From the NCBI GenBank assembly GCA_964270895.1, contig OZ185437.1: a DNA stretch of 64,000 bases. One strand, 5' to 3'. The notes under the pieces were generated by a model. It did no database searches, had not been told where the DNA came from, and saw only the letters and a program-made list of their open reading frames with translations. This DNA is from Podarcis filfolensis. Lineage: Eukaryota. The first letter of the stretch is position 1. Every line of letters starts with the position of its first letter. This document shows, piece by piece, positions 7,120 to 48,041 of the stretch. A program made the position numbers and the translations under genes.

Positions 7120-7356
7120 CTGCAATGCGAAAGGGGTATTTAACACACAAATCATCTAAAGCAACCAGGATGTTTTTAGTGTTTAAGTCCACAGGTGAAA
7201 ATAGAACAAATATTTCATCCTGATTAAGCTAGTTTTTCTTCTAAGCATGGAAGCTTCGCTGTGCACATGCAACTTTAGCCCACCCCATCTTATTTTAGAT
7301 TGGGCTCCACCAAAATAAATCTAGGGCAAGCCTCAGCCAATCAGGATTCTCTAGGT

Positions 7357-7477
7357 CAGGGACGAGGAACCTGTGGCCATCCAGATGTTGTTGGACTACA
7401 ACTCCCATCTTTGCATGATTATTGGTCGGCTCTGATGGGAGATGGGAGTCCAACAACATCTGGACTCCCTATCCCTG
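7357..7477. mobile_element. Palindromic hAT-type MITE (abundant lizard family)
   Basis: Self-complementary arms ccagatgttgttggact / agtccaacaacatctgg; CAGGG...CCCTG ends; related copies at 29169, 45586, 48416, 60395, 61484. Confidence 0.75.
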
Positions 7478-8487
7478 TTCTATGCACTGGCTCACGCCAA
7501 TTAAGTCATCAGTACAAGCTGGGAGCCCTAATGACTTCTGAGTGGGTGACAGGCAGTATGGTAGGCAGAGCTCACTATTCATGGCTCAGGGTGTTTCCTG
7601 CTCTGAAGTTCAGAATTGGTCTCTCTGAATATGGGAATAACGTGATAGCATTCCAGACTAAGGAGCAGATGGATGGCCTTTCCTTCTAACACCGTATGGC
7701 AACTTTATTTGACTATATCTTCAAAACAACAACCAACTATGTCTTTTCTCCAATATACATGAAATTACACAAATATTGAGATTTTGTGGTATGTACAGTA
7801 ATTAAATTTAATCCATTAAAATAAGGCAGGTAATGAATCAACTGACAGCGCTAATTACAATTAAGAACATTTTCCTCTTTGAGTGGCTATGTCCATGCAA
7901 TTGCCGTTCTACAGAGAGTAAAAGTCAGAATTGAAACTGCACTGTTCGTTATACCATATGTTTACCTTTCAGTGAACAATTCAGGTTCTAATTCTGTAAT
8001 TCATCTCCTTCTCTCCTCCCTCCCTTCTTCCCAGCCCCAAACTATGTATATCTTGGAGAGTTCATGGAGTTAGAGACTGGAAAATTTAGAAGATGTTGGT
8101 CTACAAGCCAGACATGCTGTGTGCAATTGGAATGCAACTTTCCCACAGTACTAGGTCCACTGTGGGGGAAGCAGCCTCTCTCACAGCAATAGGTAGACTA
8201 ATTACTCAGTCCATTTTTTTAAAAAAACACTCTTTTTTTAACATTTACTACAACATTCTTCTATATAGCTGTTTAAGCAGTCTATTTACTCCTTCCTTAC
8301 ATCTACTGGCTGAGATCCAAATGGACATGCATCATGATACCACACATTACAAACTGCTTTAAAATGCTGAAGTGCTACTCAAAAAATAAGGAACTATTCA
8401 AACTATAATCAAATTCTTCCAGAACCATGCATATTCAAGTTAGGGGTGAGTGATCACACTCTTGTTTTCAAGAGTTTCAACTGAATA

Positions 8488-14763: not shown

Positions 14764-15132
14764 CAGGGACGCGGGTGGCGCTGTGGGTAAAACCTCAGCG
14801 CCTAGGACTTGCCGATCGCATGGTCGGCGGTTCGAATCCCCGCGGCGGGGTGAGCTCCCATCGTTCGGTCCCAGCTCCTGCCCACCTAGCAGTTCGAAAG
14901 CACAATTAAGTGCAAGTAGATAAATAGGTACCGCTTTCTAGCAGGAAGGTAAATGGCGTTCCGTGTGCTGCTCTGGTGCTGGTTCGCCGGAGCAGCTTCG
15001 TCACGCTGGCCACGTGACCCGGAAGTGTCTGCGGACAGCGCTGGCTCCCGGCCTCTAGAGTGAGATGAGCGCACAACCCTAGAGTCTGTCAAGACTGGCC
15101 CGTACGGGCAGGGGTACCTTTACCTTTACCTT
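14764..15132 (+). mobile_element. Full-length Sauria SINE, CpG-rich (young) subfamily
   Basis: A and B boxes (TGGCGCTGTGG, GGTTCGAATCC); (ACCTTT)n tail; 14-bp TSD TACAATAATGTGTA at 14750-14763 and 15133-15146. Confidence 0.93.
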
Positions 15133-15239
15133 TACAATAATGTGTAGTACTACTTTGTAGTGAAAATCAGAAATAAGAGCAAAACAAAAACAACAGCAGA
15201 CTAGAAAGGTAAACAACAGTGCAAATACAACTAACGTAC

Positions 15240-15401
15240 CTTTTTGTTGAGAGTTTTCCATCTTGTGTTAACATCCTCAAGATCACGCTCAAGGTTATCA
15301 GTACTAGCATTTTTAGCAGCACTCTGAATAAGGCCTTGACCCAACCAATTTACCTCCTGTTGCTTAACCTGCAGTGGTTCAATCTTTTCCTTCTCGAATA
15401 C
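15240..15401 (-). CDS. DST: DST exon ([10 protein letters not shown]...WKTLNKK), 162 nt, phase 0-0
   Basis: ctgaag|GTATTC acceptor (AAG type), AAG|GTACGT donor; not in ORF track. Confidence 0.94.
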
Positions 15402-16720: not shown

Positions 16721-18202
16721 TCTATATAGTAGAGTTTGAAAGTACGAGTAGTAACGGTGGACAAGGCAAATGCTTAAAGTTTGGTGAGGAAATTAATCAA
16801 TCGTCTGAATATGCTCAGCATATGTTTCTGTGGTGCATAATGATTTGCATAGTCATTTAAAAATGATGCAGTGCTCTTAATTCTAATGGGAGGAGCTGGT
16901 GTTGGACAGTGTGGCTCCTACAGACCAAGTGAGCAGTGAGATGCTGGGCACATGCAGGAAGGGACCTGCCCCAGTCCTAACTGCACAGTGGAGAAATGCA
17001 AGCGCTATCCAACGATTTGGGGGCCACTATAGCATGGTGAGCCTGGACCTCAGGAATGGCCTGGGAGAATGAGCTGATCATATGACTAAGGAACTACACC
17101 AGCATTCACCTTCTAGATAAGACTAGTAATGGTTATATTGTTTTAGAAGATACTGAAAAACAGTGGGGACCATGTCCCTTTATTTCCCAGGTGGTCTTCA
17201 TTGGCAAGAAATTCAAGCATGCTTCACACAATGATATCATAATGCAGGTTAACTCAACCCACCAACCTAAGTGATGTTCATTTGAGAACTTGCAAAGGCT
17301 AGTGACAGAAAATATTCCACAGGCATCAAATGCTGTTGGTGGGTTATGAACCCAGGCTATACAAACTGTGGTCTTAAAGCTTCTTACCTTGTAAGTACTC
17401 CCTCCCCTCTCCCCCCCCCCCCAAAAAATCTACTTTTTCTTCTTCTACTGCTACTACAGACACTGTCCCTTGGCAGCAATTTCACTATAGTCAGCAAAAT
17501 ATTGTGAAGCCATTGTACTGCAATACTGTACTGAGCTTTATTATTATAGCTTTACTAGCAAATATGACTCACATCCTGAATATCTATTTCAGCTGCCATT
17601 AGTAACATCATTCCCTTAATACAAGCAATGTTATGGGGATACTACAAGTGTACCTCAGTATGGCTAAAGTTATTCCTCAGAACCTAGGAGCTAGACACTC
17701 AAGTAGCCCAGGACACCCAAATTCCTAGAACAGTCTGAATATAAAGCATGTTTATAGTTGATGTACCTCAATATCAGCCCTAAGTAATTTTTATGCTCAC
17801 ATAATTGAAAACAAAAATGATAAGAAGCCTCCCCAAGATGGGATACATAAATTGTACACCAAAATGGCCAAGCACAACACTAGTAGGAAAAAAGAAACTT
17901 GCTATGCACATTGTGTAAGAAACCCAGATTTTCTAGGGTAGTCTGCAAACAGCACATTTTCACACCTAGGTTTACGTCATAACAGCAGCCAGCACTTCAA
18001 CACACAGCAAGCACATTTGACACACAGGACAGTGTGTGGCCCATCTCTCCTCGAGGCCTTAAATCCACACAAATAACCGGGAGAAGGGGGTTTTGCAGAG
18101 GCAGTGAGGAACTTAAGTCCGAACATGGACAGCTCACACACGTTTGAGACTACATGCAATAATCCTCACACACGGTGGTGTGTTACATAGTAGCAACCAG
18201 GA

Positions 18203-18230
18203 ACACACACACACACACACACACACACAC
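18203..18230. repeat. (AC)14 microsatellite
   Basis: Direct reading. Confidence 0.95.
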
Positions 18231-19617
18231 GTATAATGCTGTTTTTGCTGCACTCAATAGCACTACCTATTTGCAGGACATTGTGAGATTTGTTAGGGGG
18301 GGGCATTATAAAGCAGATTTCTGAGGAACCAAGTAGTTGAAAACAGCAAACAGGTCTTACCTTTCCCACAAAATAATATATAATATGGGCAAGTTCTCTT
18401 TACTTTAGAGAAATAAACAAGGGCTGGGATGCAAAAGCTAATTTACACATACCCAAGTGTTAGCTCAGTAGTATCTTTGGCAATCAAACAGGCAGGCACA
18501 TGTACACACCCCAGGTTCCATAAACTACTTTTGAAATTCCCCTCTCTTTCAAAAGAAGCTTCCTGTGTTTGAGGTTGCTGTGTGAGAAACACAAGTGCTG
18601 CTCCAGTTTAGGCCCATGGAACTAGCAATTCAGTCCTTCAATCCAACTCTCTTCTATTTCAGATGTTCATATATTTTTAAGACAATTCCATAGCAATCCA
18701 AACCGAGTTGTTCCCCTTGATTTGTTGTTTAGATACACATACCTACTCACAAAAGTAGGACTTGAGGCTAGAGTTTGCCAGAACAGCTTAGCAACAAGTC
18801 CTAAAATAACTCAAGACACAACCAGATCAGAGTGACCAAAAACAAAAAGAACAAAATTAAATTAAAGACTTCACAAGCTCCCCATGCTTATTACAAAGCT
18901 GTTTTCTACTTCCTTACTTCATCCACCGCTCAGTAAATGTTACAAGATCCCTTGTAAAAAAAATCCCCTACAACTTTAGGACTACTTTTTGGCATGAAGA
19001 TGCAAGGAAATAATTTCAGTACGTGCAACAAGCCTTTAATCTGTGTACTTTGGAAACCGCAGCAATCTGAGCATCGTTGTGTATACCTTTATGATGAACG
19101 GTGCAATCCTATACGTGTCAACTCAGAAGAAGCATGCCCATTGGGTTTAATGGGCCTTACTCCCATGAAAGTGTGTACAGTATATGGCTGCAGCTGAAAT
19201 CTGGTTAAATCTGAATAGGGAAGGCCTATCTGCCCTTGAATGGCATTGGCTGCTTGAAACATAATTTGAGGGGAGGGGAGGAGGGGGTGCTGAACATCAA
19301 TGCCTAGTGGACGCATTCCAAATAAAGGGTAACAGGCACCATCTGGACAATAAATAGCCATGCAAACAAACAGCTGGAAGCAATCAACCCTGTCACAAAC
19401 TGCCCTTAATCAATTTACTGAAGTGACCATCTCGCCAATTTCTGCCTTCTAATAACTTGTTGGGCAAATGATTCTAAAGGAACTCTTTGGGTAGATTAGC
19501 AAAATCTAAACATAAGCATTCATGATGCAATTACAGAAGAAAAATAATAATAAAAAAATAAAATAAAAAATAACCCACCCTGCAGCATGAAAAGAATGCA
19601 TTTTAGTTTGGAATTAC

Positions 19618-20904
19618 CTTATAAGACAACATGCCATTGCACACTGTATCCAAGGTTTGTTCTATTTGCATGCCTGTAGTCCAAAAGCTGAATTCAGCAC
19701 TGATTGGATTTGCTTTTTGACAGCATGTGGTATTATTAGCCTCTAAAGCCTGACAGGACAATTCTATTGCACTTGTATGGGCCATATTACTTTCCTCAGT
19801 TTCATGCAAAATCACATATTTTACTAAGTCCGTATCACTAGCATGTAAAGCTGCATCATCATCATAAATATCTATATCCTGAGTTGAAATATCCAGGAGG
19901 TCCTTTTCAATCATCCTGTCTTGGGTGTCTAATGGCTCATTAACTTCAGCGCTGTTCCTCACTTCCTCTTTGTCTAAAGTGAAATCATGTTCCCTCTCAC
20001 CATCCAGGAGCCATTGGGGATGTGCTAAGAGGTCTTCTTTCAAATATGTCAGTGGACTGCAATGTCCATCTCCTTCCCCTTGGTTGCCCTCATAGTTCCA
20101 GAAAGGTTCTTGCTCTATATGTGAAGCATTCTGCAATTTTACTCGACAGTGTCCACTGGTAGGGGCACTTCTGGAGGTCAGCAATGAAATTTGATGTTCA
20201 CTACTAGAAATGGTAGGAGAAAATGATCCAAATTTACCTACAAACTGATTATCGTCTATGGAAGATATGCTCCTAAATTGAGTTTGTTCCCCTTCTAGCA
20301 CATTTTGTTTTTCTTCTCTTTCTGCTGGAGGACTGCACAGACCAGAGTCGTCTTCTTCGGAAGTTAGAGAACTAGTCCCACATTTGACCTGGCCTGTTGC
20401 TGCTAAGTCGGACACATCAACAGTCCCAGCAAGTGAACACTCACTTTTATTTGCATAGTCTGCAAAATTTGGTGGAACAAGCATCCTCCAGGATCTCCTA
20501 TGTTCTTTCTTTTCTGTGTGATACTTTGCTTTGGGCAAGCCAGCTGTTCGAATGATGTCACTGTTCAGCTTAAGGGCATCAAAGATCATTTTTTCATCTA
20601 GCTTATTGGCTTCCCGTCCTCTGAGTTCAAAGACACTAGAAGAGGAGAGGGCACCATTGGAGCACAATGTACTAAGGTCCAGTGTTCTATGACTATACGG
20701 CAAAGTCCGATCTGAGAAATGTCTGGAGGAGAGGCTGCCTTTAGAACCTGAGTCAATCTGTTCATTCAGCCGCACTGTGTCATAGATTGACCTCTGGGGA
20801 ACATAACAGTCCTCAATATTTATATCCTCTTCTTCTTCATCACCTTTTCCTACACAAGGAGGATTCTGGCGTAAACAGTCTGGCCTGCTCAGCGGCTTCC
20901 CCAT
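19618..20904 (-). CDS. DST: KIAA0754-like nested/alternative exon of DST (MGKPLSRPDCLRQNPPCVGK...GMLSYK), 429 codons from ATG to an in-frame donor
   Basis: 1.3-kb open frame; strong Kozak GAAATGG; motifs shared with recalled human KIAA0754 (MGKPLSRPDCLR, IEDCYVPQRSIYDT, NEQID, KLDE..IFDALKL, RRSW); AAG|GTAATT phase-0 donor at 19618/19617; phase-1 acceptor at 20945. Confidence 0.85.
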
Positions 20905-21479
20905 TTCTGCAGGAATTAACAGGTCTAGCACTGCTGCTAGGCTATCTTATTGGAGACACACAACACACATAAAGTAAAAATTAAAATAAAGTAATAGAAA
21001 AGCAGTTTTTAAAAAGTACAGTAAACTTGCCCTCAGCAGAAAGATGCTTACATACTAAAACACAGGAAATAATTTATGAGGCGGTTAAGGTCGTAATCAG
21101 TGCATCTGTGTAAGTTTACCTGGCTGTGATTTAAAACATTTCTCCCCCTGCCCCTAAAATATAAAGTGCTTGAGCTTAAGGGGGTGGGGAGAGGGGAAAC
21201 AAAAAAACCCCACACCTTTTAATATTTTAAAATACTAACTCAATGCACAAAGACACCAACAAAATGTACAAACCCCCAAACCCCAGGAAAATCTTTAAGT
21301 GGCTCAAAAGACTCAGAACTTCCCACATAGCATTCCATTTCAATTTTTAGGTCAAAATGTGTGTCTTAAATCTCCAGATTAAGTCTTCAAAATGAATCAG
21401 CATTATAGCAGGCAGCACGCTATATTCAGGAGGTGACAGATTAACTGTAATCCATTTAAATGGCTTGCAGAATTCCATC

Positions 21480-22560
21480 TCCTTTATAAATAAGCCATGT
21501 TGTGGACGCTTTTGAAGAAAAACAAACCAGAAGAGCTGTGGACTGTGGAGACCAAGGCACAGAGAAAGGCTTCAGGAAAAACAAAGGTATATCCAGAGTT
21601 GTAATAATAATAATAATAATAATAATAAAAGAAGAAGCTTTCTCCCCCTTTTTTGGCAGCAGCTATAAATAACCTCGATTCAAAAGGCAGTTTATTCCTT
21701 GCTTCCTTAAAGCTTCTCTGTGGCGCGTTCAGAAGTTCCATGGGAAACACAACAGTTTTCTGAGGAGCCAGACCAATGAAATAATAATACAAAAAAGCAA
21801 CAGAACAGAATTAGTAGAAAAAGAAACTTTTCCCCCAGTTTCACTCGCAGAACACATTCCTTGAAAGTTGTTGTCCTGTTTTAAGGCAACACAGCAGGAA
21901 ACTAGAGCGTTTCTTCCTCCACTCCGGCACAAAGGCACAACAGATTCACATTCTGTTTAAATTCAGCAGGACTTTTTTTTTTCTTTTTCATAAACGGTGG
22001 CTAAAAGAGCGTGGTCACTGTTTTCATCTCCGTCTTGAAGCGCAGCTGTAGCGAAGAAGGCATTAAAAAGAGCTCACAACAATAAACGCTCACATGTCCT
22101 GCCCAGCGCAGCTGATAAGCTTTCCGGCTCTCCCTGGTTTCTTATGGTCTGACAGGCATCCCTCCCAATAGTGAGCTTAAAAGAAACGCCCTTTGCTATT
22201 CTTTAGGCAACATCTGCTCCTATCGCATTCGTTCCCTGAGTATTATTCCAACCGAGCATTAGGAGGTGCCTGACCTCTTAGCTCTTCCCCCTTACGCTTC
22301 CTGCCCCACATGACTTTACTTAGCCATCTTTCACTTTTACTGTTTGTCTTGTCTCTGAATGCGGCTGAGCCTTTTCAGGGGGAGGTGCACAAAGGAGCAA
22401 GTTCCTGTCTGCAGCACTCCTGCATCTCGGAGTCTGTGCTCTCTAATTCTGGAGGAAAAGAGGGTGGGTGGGTGGTGGCTCACAAGCAGAATGGAAAAAC
22501 CGGTGCTAATTAGTTCAAAATGTCAAAAATTTAGTACATATTGCTTAACCGGGTAACCTG
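21480..22560 (-). promoter_or_regulatory. Putative internal promoter/enhancer upstream of the KIAA0754-like exon
   Basis: About 20 CpGs in 21670-22560 by manual count, with no recognisable repeat; AGCGCAGCTG (E-box) twice (22039, 22105); YTA(W)4TAR MEF2-like sites at 21484 and 21663. Confidence 0.45.
21602..21628. repeat. (TAA)9 microsatellite
   Basis: Direct reading; source of the poly-Tyr in ORF 21484..21792. Confidence 0.95.
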
Positions 22561-23424
22561 ACACCATACAAATATGGACCAGACTACCCAGGACCCTTCT
22601 AAAACACTGACAAACTGCACTTATTCTGCTTCATAACAAAAATAATAATCCAGTACTTACAAATTATGCAGATTAACAGGAATCTGAATATAGTGGATGG
22701 TCACTTTTAATGGTATGTAGCATTATAAACTAAACTAACCAGCTGTATAATAAGAATTCAATCAAATTGAATTACTTTCCACCATCACCATAAATCAATT
22801 TTAATTAACAGCCAGATCTTACTTCTGAGCAAGCCCCATGAAAAATCTCCATAGGATTGCATCCTTCGCTCTATATTTGTAACACATGTACATTATATTC
22901 TATAATTAAGGATTTAGCCAGCAAATTGGTCTCTCTGAATGACTACATAATGCATTCTTCATTCACAATCCAGTTAATCCAATGAAAAGGGATTTGCTTG
23001 ATATTTTTTTTACACTTCCTGGCTCTCAGACAACTGCAAATCCCAACATGCAAAGAAGTGCTGCAACTTTTCAAAAATCTCACCCAATACAGTACTCCTA
23101 AAAACCACACTATATTGAGGTAATAGCATGAGTAGTTTTACTTATTTGTTTCTGGATCTATTCAGATGGAAGGCATATTACATTTTTAATAAAATAAATA
23201 GCTAAAGCACTAAAAAGAGTAAAAATAAGACAGAGCAAGGAGAGCAGCTCATTTCTAAAAGCTGTTGGATTGTTAATTTATTTGCCATATATATACCAGC
23301 ATATCTACATATAAAAATGCCCACATTGCTAACAACCATCATGTCCCACTAAAAATACAATGTTTCACACCACCATCTGCAGTCACAACAAACCATATAC
23401 AAAAACTACAGCAGAAAAAGTTAC

Positions 23425-23776
23425 CCTCCCTTGGGAAGGCAGCACTATAAGAAGGGATAGTCGAAGACAGGAGTGAAGTTTCTGGCAGTCCATTGCCATG
23501 CATATTCACTACTCCATATTCACTACTCTTATTGTGTGCCACAAAGGATATTCCCAAATAAAGTGCAGCAAGTGTTTTCAAAGAAGTGGCCCTAGATGGG
23601 GGGCAGGAGACACTATCTGGGCTCTGCTTCAAGCAGCAAAATGGGTCAGTACTGGAATGACAATGAACCTTAAGACCCTCCTTTGAAGGAAGTCTGTCAC
23701 TCCCAACCCACAATGTATTTATAGTCAGCTGAGCATGGATTTGTTGAACAGGCACTGTACATGTCCAAGGCAGCAC
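23425..23776 (-). CDS. Candidate upstream coding exon (VLPWTC...MHGNGLPETSLLSSTIPSYSAAFPRE) with phase-1 donor matching the acceptor at 20945
   Basis: 117 open codons; GAGG|GTAACT donor; ATG with A at -3 at 23503; joins as ...FPRE-D-SLAAVLDLLIPAEMGKP. Confidence 0.45.
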
Positions 23777-30131: not shown

Positions 30132-31606
30132 CTTAAATACGTTCAGCTGCTGATTTATCGTCTCAATTTCCATTCCAACAGAACCCTGGGACTCTTCATG
30201 CTCTTCAACTTCCCCAAGCAGTTTAGAAAACCCCTTTAGTTTACTGTAGAACTCTTCAACGCGGCTAATAGTCCCTTCAATCTGTTCATCTCTGGCTTTT
30301 GCTCTGTCTAGCAACTTGTTGCACTGCTTATTTAAAGCCTCCAAGTCCCGTTTTATACCTGCAAGATCTGGAGAAGCTTCAGCTTCATTTGCTAGCATCA
30401 TTTTGCAGGTATTATTTGCATTTTCATTACTGGTTATGAGTTCCTCCAACTTTTTCAGGAAAGTTTTTATATCCTTTCGCTGTGACTGCAGTGTGACAAG
30501 ATCCCTACCCACAGAATCCATGCTGTCCAATTCATCGTCGAACTCTGCAAACTGAGAAAACATCTCTCGGATGCTGTTTTGGAAATGGCCAATTCCCTGG
30601 AGTTTAGTCTCCAGGAATGAACATTTATCTTCAACCTGCTGACTGATGGTGCTGAATTCTTCTTCTAACGTTTCTGCCTGCAACAAGAGGTCAGAGACAC
30701 CTGATGAATCTGAAGCATCTGCCACCAGTTCTTGGGCCAGCTTTTTTGTAAGGTCCACTTGAGCCTTCACGGCCTGGAGTGTTTTCTGCTGAGCCTGCAT
30801 AATTGTCAAGTGTTTGTTACTGTAAGTCTGGGGTTTGAGAGAATCGTGTGTTTCCAGCTGTTCTCTGGCATTCTTCAGCTGCTCTTCAACATCCTTTGAT
30901 GACTCTTGAAACTCTTTCAGTCTCTGAGACATCTTTTCCAGACCATCTCTCTTAGCATGCAGTTGTTCTGTGACTATATCCATGTTCTGGATCAGCAGTG
31001 TCTTCTCCTCTTCAATAATGTCTTTGTCTGTCTGACAGGCACTGAGTAATGTCTCAGCTGCATTACTTAACAGTTCCACCAACCCTTGGTGTTTGTCTAG
31101 GTCCTTCTGCCAGCTCTTCACCTGAGCGATGGAATTCTCTAGCCGAACAGGATCTATGCTCATTTCTATTTGAGAGGTATTGCTTTGGCATTTCGCTATC
31201 CAGGGTTGTAGGTTTTCTACATGCTCTCTGTATCTAAGGGCTTTTTCCAAACAATCATTTAATTTATCTTGCCTTTCTTTAACTTGCTTGTTCATTTCAT
31301 CCCAGTTACCTCTGAGCAAGTTCAGCTGGGCCTGCAGCTCAGCCTTCTCTGCTCCCTGAGTCTTTTGGAGTAAACTTTCACCTTCTGTGATGATTTTTTC
31401 ATAAGAACCAGTCTGGTCAGACAAGGCAGCCTTGAACTCTTTCTGATCATCAATTAATGTCCACAGAGACTCCAGCTTGGTAGAGATGGGACAAGGCTGA
31501 TTCTGTTCTTCCTTCTTTTTGTCCAACCAGGCCTGAAAGTCCTTAGACATTTGCTGGAACTGATGAGAACTAACGTAAGTTGACTGAAGTTGCTCAATGT
31601 GATTGC
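30132..31606 (-). CDS. DST: DST large rod exon ([11 protein letters not shown]...QQLNVFK), 1475 nt, phase 1-0
   Basis: tcttctgcag|GCAATC acceptor, AAG|GTAAGA donor; ORF 30105..31631. Confidence 0.97.
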
Positions 31607-31660
31607 CTGCAGAAGACAAATAAACAAACAAACAGAAGGTCTTAAAATCCGTGTCTTCTC

Positions 31661-40154: not shown

Positions 40155-41185
40155 GATGGCAAATATTATCTAATAGGCATTACCGGAACCTGGTGGAATG
40201 AGACTGCAATGAAGGAATTGAGGGGTATGACTCATTCAAAATGAATAGATCAAACAGGAAGGGGGGAGAAATAGCATTACATGTAAAAGATGTGTACACT
40301 TGTGAAGAGATCCATGAGACTATATGGGTAAAAATGGTAGGAGAAGGAACAACAGTGACCTTGGACTGAAGACTTGAATGAAGCCTTCCTAGAGCAGATT
40401 ATCAACCATTCAAAAAGGAAAGATATAGTAGTCATGGGAGACTTCAACTACCCCAATATCTGTTGGAACTCAAACTCTGCCAAGAATTTAACATCCAGCA
40501 AATCCCACAATTGGCTCTCTGATGATTTCATTTCCCAAAAGGTAGAAGAAGCAACAAGAGGGTCATCTATATTGGACCCGGTCCTCACCAACAGGGAGGA
40601 ACTGATCAAGAAGGTGGAAATACTCAGAAACTTGAGAGGAAGTGATCATGCCCTCCTGGTTTCATGATACAGAGGAGAAGGGAAAGCTGAGTGTAGTCAA
40701 GAGATGCACTCTGGACTTTAAGAAGCTCAATTTCTAAAAGTTTAAGGAACTACTGGGAGAAATCCCATGGTCAGAAATACTCAAAAGCTAAGTGAGCCCC
40801 AGATAGATGGGAGTTTATTATAGGTGAAATATTAAAGGCCCAAATGCCAATAATTCCAACAAGAAAGAAAAGCAGGAGGTAGCTAAAGAAACTGGTGTGG
40901 CTGCATAAGGAGCTGATGGATTAGCTGAGATGTAAGAAGGGAATGTATTATAAATGGAAGAGAGGAGAAATCACAAAGGAAGGGTAGATACAAGTATCCA
41001 ACAGTTGCAAGGAGAAGGTCAGGCAGGCCAAAGCTCAGAATGAAGTCAGGTTTGCAAGAGAGGTTAAAAATAACTTTAAAAGCTTATTCAGCTATGTTCG
41101 AAGCAAGAAGAAAGAACAATCAAGTAATAGGGCCCTTGTGTGAAGAAGACAGAAAAATGCTATTGAGTGACAGAGAGAAGTATTT
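40155..41185 (+). mobile_element. CR1 LINE ORF2 fragment (AP-endonuclease region), frameshifted
   Basis: IVVMGDFNYPNICWNS, VEEATRGSSILD.VLTN, GSDH motifs in ORF 40374..40667. Confidence 0.88.
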
Positions 41186-45484: not shown

Positions 45485-45585
45485 CTGAAAGAAACAAGTA
45501 GATAAAGGATAGTTTATAAGTTCATAACCATTTTAGAATACAAGCAACTGCCTTTGGCAGAGTTATGCTAATAGTCCAGCTAAAT

Positions 45586-45716
45586 AAGGGATGGGGAACC
45601 CATAGCCACCCAGATGTGGTTGGACAACAATTCCTATCACCCTGGTACCATTGGCCATGGGGGGCTGAAATTGGAATCGAACAACATCTGGAGGGCCATA
45701 GGTTCACTACCCCAGG
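45586..45716. mobile_element. Palindromic hAT-type MITE
   Basis: gggatggggaacccatagccacccagatgt ... acatctggagggccataggttcactaccc. Confidence 0.7.
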
Positions 45717-48041
45717 GCTATCACAACATAATTTACTGCAATTGGAAACAGCACTTTGGGGTCTCATGCACAAGTGTTTGCCAATCCTGCTCCCTAACCC
45801 CCTATGACTGGAATCGATGGAATTGAACCTCAAATTTTGTAATACATGAAAGATAGCTCCTGTACCTTAAACAAGTTATTGGGGAAGAAGAGAAGTTAAT
45901 CCGTAAAGTGTAGCTTGCCTTGGCACACTGCGGCAGGAGTTTGAAAAGCTGCACCTGACAATATTCTCTTATCTACACAAGTGTCAATTTTACAAGAACC
46001 TTAACGCTGAAAGGTTAGCCAAAAATACCAGCAAAGCAATACTTTGCATGTAAAACACACATTCAAAGTATTGCTAGGTCGCTGTTTTCGGCCAAGCTTA
46101 TTTCAACCATGAACAAGATAGAGAGTTGAAAACATAATCCCTTTGAAAACAGGCAGGAGAAATTTCCCCTAAGTTTTGGAGCAGGATAGGCAACTAGACA
46201 AAGTAGTGGGAGTGTCCCCCCCCCCTTTTCAACTTTATTTTTAAAAATCCCTGTAGCTGCCTGTATCCCACATATTCTGGAACACTCATGGGAAATAACA
46301 CACTCTCTCTCCTCTTAAGGAACAGTCCCCACTCCCAAAAAAATTCTTCTAACTCACTTTCCCAATCCACACCTAAAGATTTGCCTAAGGAGTATTCTTC
46401 AGAATTTAGTATTTGCAAACAGCTAGCCAATATGACCAATAACTAGCTGTGACAAGGAGCATACCACACGATATAGGAAAGAGGCCAGTTAACACAAGCC
46501 GCACACAGTAGCGAACAATGCTTGGCTCTCAGAGTAGCCCCAGAAGGATGCAGAATTTTCTACTTGAGGTTCTCTCAAGTGAAACTGTACCTTAGAAACT
46601 GAACCTTAAAAATTCACAGCATAGGGGACCCATAGATAAAAGTTATTTTTTTCTGAGAGCCTACTATGGATTCTTCATCAGTACGCTGACTGGAGTCAGA
46701 CATATTCGACTCTGAGAACAACAAAGTGTTGGGAACACGTGATTCCCTTTTACAAGGGAGCTGGGAACATGTGATTCCTTCTATGCCTGAAGTGCATGCC
46801 CACAGAAGACGGCCTTGTGGATAAAACAGTTGGATAGAACAGTTAATCGATTCAGGTGGCTTGACACAGGTTTTAAAAAGGCAAATTGCAAAATATCTAA
46901 AAGAAAGAGGTTATATAAAAAGCAAATGTCCCCAAAGACTGCTGAGGCCCGAAGTCAAAGGGCAATATTCTACAAAAGAAGGATTTCATCTGTTCTTCCT
47001 GCTGATTGATTTTAGCAACTGATATCACTGTCTCATAAAGGGGACAATTCTATCAGTTGCTCAGAACTACCCTACATCTCCAAGCCAGGTAAATACAACC
47101 TGGATTTTATTCTTTACAGCAGGAATGGGGAACCCTTTTCAGCCTGTGGGTAGCATTATTTTCTGGGCAAGTTTCCAGGGACAACATGCCAGTGGTGCGC
47201 TGTAACAGAGGCAAAAGCAAGCAGAGTAATGAATGTAAATTTTGTCTTTGTACAATAGGCTAGTCTCTACACACACTCCCATACTCTTTTCTATCCTCAA
47301 GAAGGGTGCAAAGCGAAGAACGGGTGTAGCTGGTGAGGGGATCTGAAATGGGGGGGGGTTCCCCAGAAATTCTGTAGTGTCGGGTTTCCCGCTTTTTTTT
47401 TACACATTCTTTATTCATCAAATATCAAACACAAATAGCTAGAAAAGCAGCTAGAAAAATATCAGACGGAGCACTGAAAAACAAACCACCAAAAATTTAG
47501 CAGGTTAAGCAGTGCCAGGCATGAGTATGAAAAGAGGTATTGCAATATTTTAATACATTAACTTGTAACAGCAGGATGTTAAACAGATGGACTTCGCATA
47601 CTTGACGGTTGGAACCAGGGAATTAAAGGCTTAAGTCTGCATAGCCAGCTTTCTTTTGCAGGCCTTTATACATATTCCAGTAATCTCATATGGCTGCTAG
47701 GGCAGAACAGTTATAATTTTAAAAGAAACCTCAATCAGCTCAGATATCCTCTTCTCCAGACTCTTAGGATGTGTGTCTTTTTAACTCACTGAAACCACAA
47801 GATCACCCCTGAATCCAAAGTTTAGTTTAACCCGTCATTACCTCTGCACTTCTTGGTAACAGTTTCTCTGTTTCAGCATATTTGATTATTATTACAAGTA
47901 GAAATATCACTGAACTGTGTGTCATTTCCCCTAATTCTTTTCCGGCTTGAAACAGGAAAACAAATTCTGAACATGGACAGTTAATGCCTATGCTGGCCTT
48001 TGAATAATAGATAGTTGATGGCCTCTGATCTTAACTTTTTA

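Follow-up and report, generated by a model that had tools for sequence, protein, structure and literature searches.

The window analysed here, a stretch of 64,000 nucleotides from the genome of the lizard Podarcis filfolensis (contig OZ185437.1, assembly GCA_964270895.1), carries on its minus strand (-) a part of the dystonin gene, DST. Two exons encoding the spectrin rod of dystonin, one ending at 30132 and the next one starting at 15401, delimit an intron of about 14.7 kb, within which an open reading frame (ORF) lies on the same strand at 19603..20931. An initial annotation, made from the letters of the sequence, had described this frame as a KIAA0754-like exon spliced in frame into dystonin to give an isoform devoid of its head. 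We find it very probable that DST possesses an alternative first exon whose coding part is 20904-19618 (-), and that this exon is transcribed from an internal start and spliced to the exon at 15401 to produce a short dystonin. The exon, its splicing and its own 5' untranslated region (5'UTR) could be documented in other species; from their conservation, we infer that this lizard uses the exon as well.

The exon and its host intron

The features on which the argument is built are the following.

19618..20904, minus strand: coding portion (429 codons, ATG to phase-0 donor) of the alternative first exon
19612..19617, minus strand: splice donor GTAATT, with GT at 19617-19616
15240..15401, minus strand: next canonical DST exon and second exon of the short isoform, 54 codons, starting VFEKEK, phase 0
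30132..31631, minus strand: canonical upstream DST exon with four spectrin-repeat matches, bypassed by the short isoform

The limits of the frame were taken from the list of ORFs and from the minus-strand sequence. Its ATG, at 20904-20902, stands in the context GCAGAAATGG, with an A at -3 and a G at +4, and the 429 codons that follow reach the donor TATAAG^GTAATT (the caret marks the splice junction), 19618 being the last base of the exon. Reading through this donor adds only four codons, VIPN, before a stop. The canonical upstream exon ends with the donor TTTAAG^GTAAGA at 30132, also in phase 0, and the acceptor of the exon at 15401 consists of a long and strong pyrimidine tract followed by ctgaag^. 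The latter exon matches the spectrin-repeat profile of Pfam. The ATG, the 429 codons, the phase-0 donor and its VIPN read-through, the size of the intron and the phase-0 VFEKEK exon had all been pointed out in the initial annotation, and all were recovered from the sequence. Stop codons make up 5.4% of the codons in the window, which gives 429 open codons a probability of about 5e-11 per start; as some 6e-6 such frames would be expected over both strands of the whole window, a frame of this length arising by chance is excluded. Residues 161-429 of the product are acidic, with an isoelectric point of 4.3 and 50 D+E versus 17 K+R.

Splicing into dystonin in other species

Residues 1-160 of a long MACF1 model served as the query of a search for long proteins, which admitted candidates of about 1,800-5,700 aa. 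The N-terminal module encoded by the exon is matched by 72 proteins of 1,874-3,424 aa, nearly all of which, among those checked, begin with MGKPLSRPDCLR. More than 30 of the 72 are named dystonin or are clearly of the DST type; long proteins of this type were found in Phrynosoma, Pseudonaja, Haliaeetus (a cluster of 16 sequences), Gopherus, Pelusios, Rhinolophus, Suricata, Sus, Balaenoptera and several teleosts. A HMMER search also placed the module at residue 1 of long proteins. The junction ...K/Q^VF(E/Q)KEEIEPLQ was observed in 16 of the proteins checked, for instance in P0201 from Phrynosoma (...NGMLSDK^VFEKEEIEPLQ), P0211 from Haliaeetus, P0212 from Rhinolophus and P0206 from Suricata. 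Pseudonaja P0203 (AFEKEE) and the mRNA-derived P0204 and P0215 have the join in this position too, the residue behind it being A or I, and the predicted junction also occurs in short gene models from the naked mole-rat (P0048) and the sea snake Laticauda (P0010). Pfam domains of the rod, EF-hand and GAS2 were detected in P0201 and P0211, the bird protein containing 15 spectrin matches.

The junction is also carried by four mRNA contigs of 9.1-10.1 kb, L001-L004, retrieved from Logan and originating from four public sequencing runs. Their ORFs, of 2,636-2,690 aa, are uninterrupted and encode Spectrin, EF-hand and GAS2 domains. A poly(A) stretch terminates L002 and L003, and in L001 the sequence stops directly behind an AATAAA. 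Their uninterrupted frames and 3' ends show that the contigs are fully spliced mRNAs. They combine the module with a spectrin rod, EF-hands and GAS2 and contain no actin-binding or plakin domain. In-frame splicing and the absence of the head, both proposed for the lizard, are thus found in the mRNA contigs of other species, and the junction in their long dystonin proteins as well. The L001 protein and Phrynosoma "Dystonin" are collinear with the window exons from 20904 down to 25 over their first ~1,100-1,155 residues. Exon by exon, P0201 is 68-98% identical to the window, and 85-98% identical in the rod exons. A protein search aimed at sauropsid transcript contigs returned gene models and no new assembled mRNAs. 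Collinear mapping of P0204 (assembled mRNA) and P0201, to residue ~1100-1155, provided the limits of the other rod exons.

13994-13821, 11347-11210, 10828-10640, 10424-10098, 9850-9752 and 7120-6878, minus strand: first six further rod exons (approximate tblastn limits)
6302-6096, 3036-2875, 2774-2667, 1885-1694 and 228-25, minus strand: last five further rod exons (approximate tblastn limits)

One short model departs from this pattern. In P0013, a "dystonin-like" protein of 491 aa from Limosa lapponica, the module is joined to the VAQRAAQLQ exon (window 13994-13821) and the VFEKEK exon is skipped; since the skipped exon comprises 54 whole codons, the frame is kept. Either a second splice form or an artefact of the annotation may account for this join.

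Conservation of the exon and age of the arrangement

Among 5.8 billion proteins searched, 194 homologues of the exon were found across jawed vertebrates, in lizards, snakes, turtles, birds, mammals, sturgeon, whale shark and teleosts. Its product is 80% identical to that of Elgaria and 72% to that of Pogona. Codon-level comparison with Elgaria, Pogona, Emydura and Pogoniulus gave ratios of nonsynonymous to synonymous substitution (dN/dS) of 0.03-0.11 for residues 1-160, 0.15-0.56 for the remainder and 0.12-0.38 for the whole exon. These values indicate that the whole frame is under purifying selection, its first third very strongly. Nesting on the same strand recurs in these four genomes and in Elephas; the host genes of the five amniotes encode products of 7,800-7,965 aa with CH, plakin, plectin-repeat and spectrin domains. 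Across six amniotes (lizards, turtle, bird and elephant) the donor AGGTAAT does not vary, and the intron diverges directly behind it; in all read-through gene models a V (GTN) comes after the junction. Conservation of both the ORF and the donor in other sauropsids, on which the initial annotation had made its case depend, therefore holds in Elgaria, Pogona, Emydura and Pogoniulus.

The exon could nonetheless be conserved but unused in this particular lizard, with a silent promoter or with a role as a regulatory or decoy element only. A microsatellite near 21640-21600 does interrupt the conserved block upstream of the exon, but the frame, the ATG context and the donor are intact, and the dN/dS of the core against the two other lizards (0.04-0.11) reveals recent purifying selection in squamates. 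We hence regard disuse of the exon as very unlikely.

The HMMER search, which was exhaustive, returned 47 clusters with E values from 1e-227 to 1e-22. All the sources looked up were vertebrate, which leaves an invertebrate origin of the module without support. The KIAA0754-like character that had been assigned to the exon is borne out by these matches: a "KIAA0754 homolog" from Hyaena (P0127) matches residues 1-256 with E=2.7e-41, and others include "MACF1 isoforms 6/7-like" proteins from Latimeria and long MACF1 models beginning with the module. A hagfish protein of 1,899 aa consists of the module followed by spectrin repeats. Over its first 230 residues, the window product is 77-88% identical to tetrapod DST-type proteins versus 44-48% to MACF1-type proteins, which identifies the exon as an orthologue of that of DST and not of MACF1. 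The occurrence of the same module in the short forms of MACF1 and in the hagfish protein implies that the arrangement predates the DST/MACF1 duplication; judging from these sequence comparisons, the combination of module and distal rod seems to be older than the two paralogues.

Upstream region and start of transcription

The following features were recognized upstream of the ATG.

20905..22400, minus strand: conserved non-coding DNA, probably serving the internal transcription unit as 5'UTR and promoter (from conservation and mRNA 5'UTRs)
20947..20949, minus strand: in-frame TAA, 15 codons upstream of the ATG
21663..21672, minus strand: A/T-rich motif TTATTTATAG, fitting YTAWWWWTAR, MEF2-like or TATA-like
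21484..21493, minus strand: second A/T-rich motif TTATTTATAA, fitting YTAWWWWTAR, within the most conserved upstream block

Identity between lizard and turtle amounts to 74% over 1.1 kb of this region (window 22385-21297), which equals the conservation of the coding exon. In a six-amniote alignment, conservation peaks at 22350-22100, 21700-21650 and 21500-21350, with blocks persisting to bird and elephant. The 5'UTRs of L001 (1,023 nt) and L004 (384 nt) are collinear with the elephant genomic DNA directly upstream of the ATG, and a 59-nt block of mammalian mRNA 5'UTR matches window 21723-21665. No upstream DST exon was found in these two 5'UTRs, the unmatched first 67 nt of L004 being a (GA)n run. 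Their collinearity with intron DNA indicates that transcription of these mammalian mRNAs probably starts inside the intron, and supports the internal transcription unit proposed in the initial annotation. More than one start site is possible since L004 begins further downstream. A scan of 18000-23000 against Rfam gave nothing save a sub-threshold match to SCARNA7 (E=0.68).

The same region bears on whether the exon might rather be an internal cassette of full-length dystonin, possibly along with an upstream candidate exon at 23425-23776, so that the module would be inserted into the rod. AG dinucleotides do occur directly upstream of the ATG (aataag^ and cctgcag^), and a few ab initio models (P0194, P0230 and P0152) place other residues ahead of the module. 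Yet either AG, used as an acceptor, would require one carried-over base to keep the frame, which the phase-0 upstream exon does not supply, and the in-frame TAA together with the phase-0 donor of that exon argues against in-frame cassette use. Moreover, none of the proteins checked has the module behind real DST sequence, and the longest of the 115 matches listed in two region searches is 4,142 aa, although proteins of up to ~5,700 aa were admitted. A cassette exon is consequently extremely unlikely in our view. The candidate at 23425-23776 was itself rejected: 23784-23618 aligns to Elgaria only, and to neither Pogona nor turtle, and no protein match to P0204 or P0201 was found.

The TTATTTA core of the A/T-rich motif at 21663..21672 is identical in six amniotes and the full 10-mer varies, ending in ...AAAG in Pogona, ...AGAG in Emydura and ...ATAA in Pogoniulus. 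Around the motif at 21484..21493, some 60 nt are nearly invariant from lizard to elephant. Each of the two motifs lies in one of the two best conserved upstream blocks. YTAWWWWTAR occurs 21 times in the window, an unremarkable count, and it is conservation alone that makes these two motifs notable; a MEF2-like or TATA-like function is suggested by their sequence as a lead only. The block 21340-21500 (-), the most conserved one upstream, starts with a mini-ORF of four codons (ATG-NNN-TAT-TTA-TAA, encoding M-x-Y-L before the stop). This mini-ORF overlaps the A/T-rich motif and is retained in all six amniotes. A longer ORF behind it, of 43 codons and starting near 21478, is conserved as well; it was considered as coding and rejected, a 2-nt indel shifting its frame in elephant. 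Finally, a trinucleotide microsatellite at 21600-21640 (-) is translated as nine consecutive Y within the ORF 21484..21792, and conservation drops at the repeat.

The N-terminal region

Three segments of the N-terminal region call for a description.

20854..20904, minus strand: residues 1-17, MGKPLSRPDCLRQNPPC, candidate N-myristoylation signal (G2, S6) with cysteines C10 and C17
20425..20904, minus strand: conserved core, residues 1-160, with blocks at residues 30-57 (IEDCYVPQRSIYDTVRLNEQIDSGSKGS), 101-116 (KLDEKMIFDALKLNSD) and 135-147 (HRRSWR..PPNF), dN/dS 0.03-0.11
20326..20370, minus strand: DST-specific motif SLTSEEDDSGLCSPP, containing DSGLCS

Residues invariant across DST-type, MACF1-type and hagfish versions were identified in a 14-sequence alignment of the window product with DST, MACF1, KIAA0754-homologue and hagfish proteins. 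They comprise M1 G2 K3 P4 L5 S6 P8 D9 C10 L11 and C17 (MGKPLS.PDCL....C, residues 1-17), IEDCYVPQRSIYDT.R.NEQID.G (30-53), LDE...FD.LKL (102-113) and RRSW (136-139). Co-translational N-myristoylation calls for a Met-Gly start, a small residue (S/T/A/G/C/N) at position 6 and a residue other than Pro at position 7; the start MGKPLSR agrees with this through G2, S6 and R7, and the residues are invariant. The N-terminus may thus be myristoylated and its two cysteines possibly palmitoylated. Thinon et al. (2014) reported MACF1 only as a substrate of post-caspase myristoylation, at a different site unrelated to the MGKPLS N-terminus. Further along, SLTSEEDDSGLCSP (residues 179-192) is kept in DST-type proteins from teleosts to mammals and is absent from MACF1-type ones; the whale shark protein P0082 reads DSGLSS. 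DSGLCS has the form of a beta-TrCP phosphodegron and, solely based on the DSGxxS consensus, could function as a degron.

No Pfam family matches the 429-aa exon product at E<=1, no PDB sequence matches it either, and the ESM Atlas gave scores of at most 0.77 and no family. For Phrynosoma P0201, AlphaFold (with a 42-sequence alignment) predicted no secondary structure and a predicted local distance difference test score (pLDDT) below 50 over most of residues 1-432, the spectrin helices beginning at residue 433. For residues 1-230 of the window product, it returned a predicted template modelling score of 0.12 and only two short helices, at 40-51 and 104-114; in the conserved core (residues 1-160) the pLDDT stays below 60. 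As no fold is predicted, the N-terminal region is best read as a disordered stretch bearing conserved linear motifs, with no folded module. The conserved N-terminal part (~150 aa) and the acidic tract of the initial annotation stand, but the conserved part is itself predicted to be disordered, and not a folded module.

Proposed function of the short isoform

From these elements a sequence of events can be pictured. Transcription would begin at a start site within the 14.7-kb rod-region intron, and the phase-0 donor at 19618 would be joined to the DST exon at 15401, giving a short dystonin of ~2,400-2,700 aa. A largely disordered N-terminal region of 429 residues would take the place of the proximal rod and of both the plakin and the calponin-homology actin-binding domains; behind it would come ~15-17 spectrin repeats, EF-hands, the GAS2/GAR domain that binds microtubules and the C-terminal tail. 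As the most likely mechanism, the invariant MGKPLS...C...C start would be myristoylated and palmitoylated, and the isoform would tie a membrane, rather than actin, to microtubules, with the spectrin repeats serving as a spacer and without the contacts made by the actin-binding and plakin domains. The conserved linear motifs would bind partners or control turnover. Two conserved MEF2-like sites would hint at expression in muscle or neurons, and SIYDTV, RRSW and the DST-only DSGLCS may be points of regulation. Such a lipid-anchored, actin-independent tether between membrane and microtubules, with its own conserved promoter and conserved phospho-motifs and kept in both paralogues since before the hagfish split, is a tentative proposal that we consider possible but rather doubtful.

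Three observations weigh against this interpretation, the first of them against its mechanism only. K3 does not fit the old PROSITE pattern for myristoylation; myristoylated ARF6 starts with MGKVLS, so that a lysine at this position also occurs there. Second, the 1.0-1.1 kb 5'UTRs of L001-L003 hold 13-14 upstream ATGs, which would hamper translation from this form of the transcript; their number suggests that translation is controlled, or that a shorter transcript starting further downstream, as in L004, is translated better. Third, many gene models of the exon run through the donor and describe stand-alone "uncharacterized LOC" proteins, and an unspliced transcript may therefore also exist.

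The last point raises the question of whether the exon makes only a stand-alone protein of ~433 aa, translated from an unspliced mRNA that ends in the intron, as in the original KIAA0754 cDNA. Most short models are indeed single-exon read-throughs (NCBI "uncharacterized protein LOC..." entries and an Ensembl model in opossum), the human cDNA FLJ26213 (P0055) holds the exon without rod sequence, and a block conserved in amniotes lies past the donor at 19090-18780, with an ATTAAA inside (~19040). Against this, the donor is invariant, and fully spliced mRNAs and many long models exist. The read-through tails, of 2-60 aa, vary between species in sequence as well as in length, which shows that they are not under coding constraint. 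A stand-alone protein is accordingly quite unlikely as the only product of the exon; as a second, co-existing product it is possible. The intronic block 19090-18780 (-), located 520-860 nt past the donor, is 68-73% identical from lizard to turtle, bird and elephant and includes the nearly invariant AGCTTTGTAATAAG; an unspliced short transcript might end there, or the block may act as a splicing element or an enhancer.

Other features of the window

A SINE-like repeat beginning GGTAAAGGTAAAGGTACCCCTGCCCGTACGGGCC occupies window 15000-15135 (-), directly downstream of the exon 15401-15240. ORFs at 7300-7689 and 45522-45833 translate to peptides similar to it (..HPDVVG.Q..S..), suggesting that one interspersed repeat is present in several copies. 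The ORF 40374-40667 (+), located within a DST intron but on the other strand, contains an endonuclease-like motif, VVMGDFNYPNICW...GSDH, resembling the apurinic-endonuclease domain of LINE retrotransposons.

Comparison with known systems

The window product is the lizard orthologue of a short dystonin isoform that is already annotated and functionally unstudied, and is not a discovery. The initial annotation had presented this isoform as a prediction, yet it is no longer unrecognized: it is annotated as dystonin in NCBI, Ensembl and UniProt for many vertebrates, and the review of Voelzmann et al. (2017; bioRxiv 10.1101/122010), the only mention that we found in the literature, refers to an exon that we take to be the present one. 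No functional study of the short isoform was found in the literature on KIAA0754, a dystonin internal promoter or dystonin myristoylation, as the initial annotation had supposed, and no paper containing the peptide MGKPLSRP was found in full-text literature. In the publications consulted on DST isoforms and disease (PMC6975176, PMC7325434), no forms other than a, b and e, with N-termini 1-3, are described.

Isoform make-up is used to explain which tissues suffer, and the short form is missing from this a/b/e picture. Conserved since before the hagfish split, it has a probable promoter of its own and a lipid anchor that its sequence makes probable, and is without actin-binding and plakin domains. 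If it is indeed a tether, it would represent an unstudied arm of DST/MACF1 biology. It could then also explain the differing effects of mutations in the distal rod or C-terminus and of those in the N-terminus, because only the former would hit the short isoform. The exon is in any case a well-supported pointer to an unstudied isoform.

The closest known proteins are the annotated short dystonins of Phrynosoma platyrhinos (P0201, 2,428 aa), Haliaeetus ("dystonin-like" P0211, 2,687 aa), Rhinolophus (P0212, 2,689 aa) and Sus scrofa (A0A480TTF5), which have the same build, with the same first exon, junction and downstream exons. They do not differ in kind from the window product, the window being the orthologous locus of another squamate. 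KIAA0754 and MACF1 isoforms 6/7, the latter a curated-style name as given in the source records, are homologous over the first ~150 residues, where MGKPLSRPDCLRQNP.C, IEDCYVPQRSIYDT.R.NEQID, LDE..IFDALKL and RRSW are invariant, and the MACF1 exon is also a first exon ahead of a distal rod, EF-hands and GAS2 (P0142, P0182 and P0195; 3,200-3,400 aa). It differs as a paralogue, with the 44-48% identity given above, and is without the DST-specific SLTSEEDDSGLCSP. The MACF1 exon moreover appears much longer (exon-level matches of ~900-1,400 aa), the whole proteins being ~600-700 aa longer.

Dystonin-a3/b3 (PMC6975176) also starts with an alternative first exon of DST for which a lipid anchor was proposed, a myristoylation motif preceding a single CH domain. 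That exon is however another one, situated at the gene's 5' end. Its isoforms retain CH2 and the plakin domain along with the complete rod, and we saw no sequence relation between the two N-termini. A more distant parallel is offered by dystrophin Dp260, Dp140 and Dp71 (PMC7372313) and by the Shot D-type without actin-binding domain (bioRxiv 10.1101/122010). They follow an analogous logic, in which an intronic promoter and a unique first exon give rise to an N-terminally truncated protein of the spectrin superfamily that keeps its C-terminal binding domains. This likeness is one of analogy only: the genes are different, dystrophin has unique first exons that are short, and the conserved 150-residue module that opens the short dystonins exists in neither dystrophin nor Shot.

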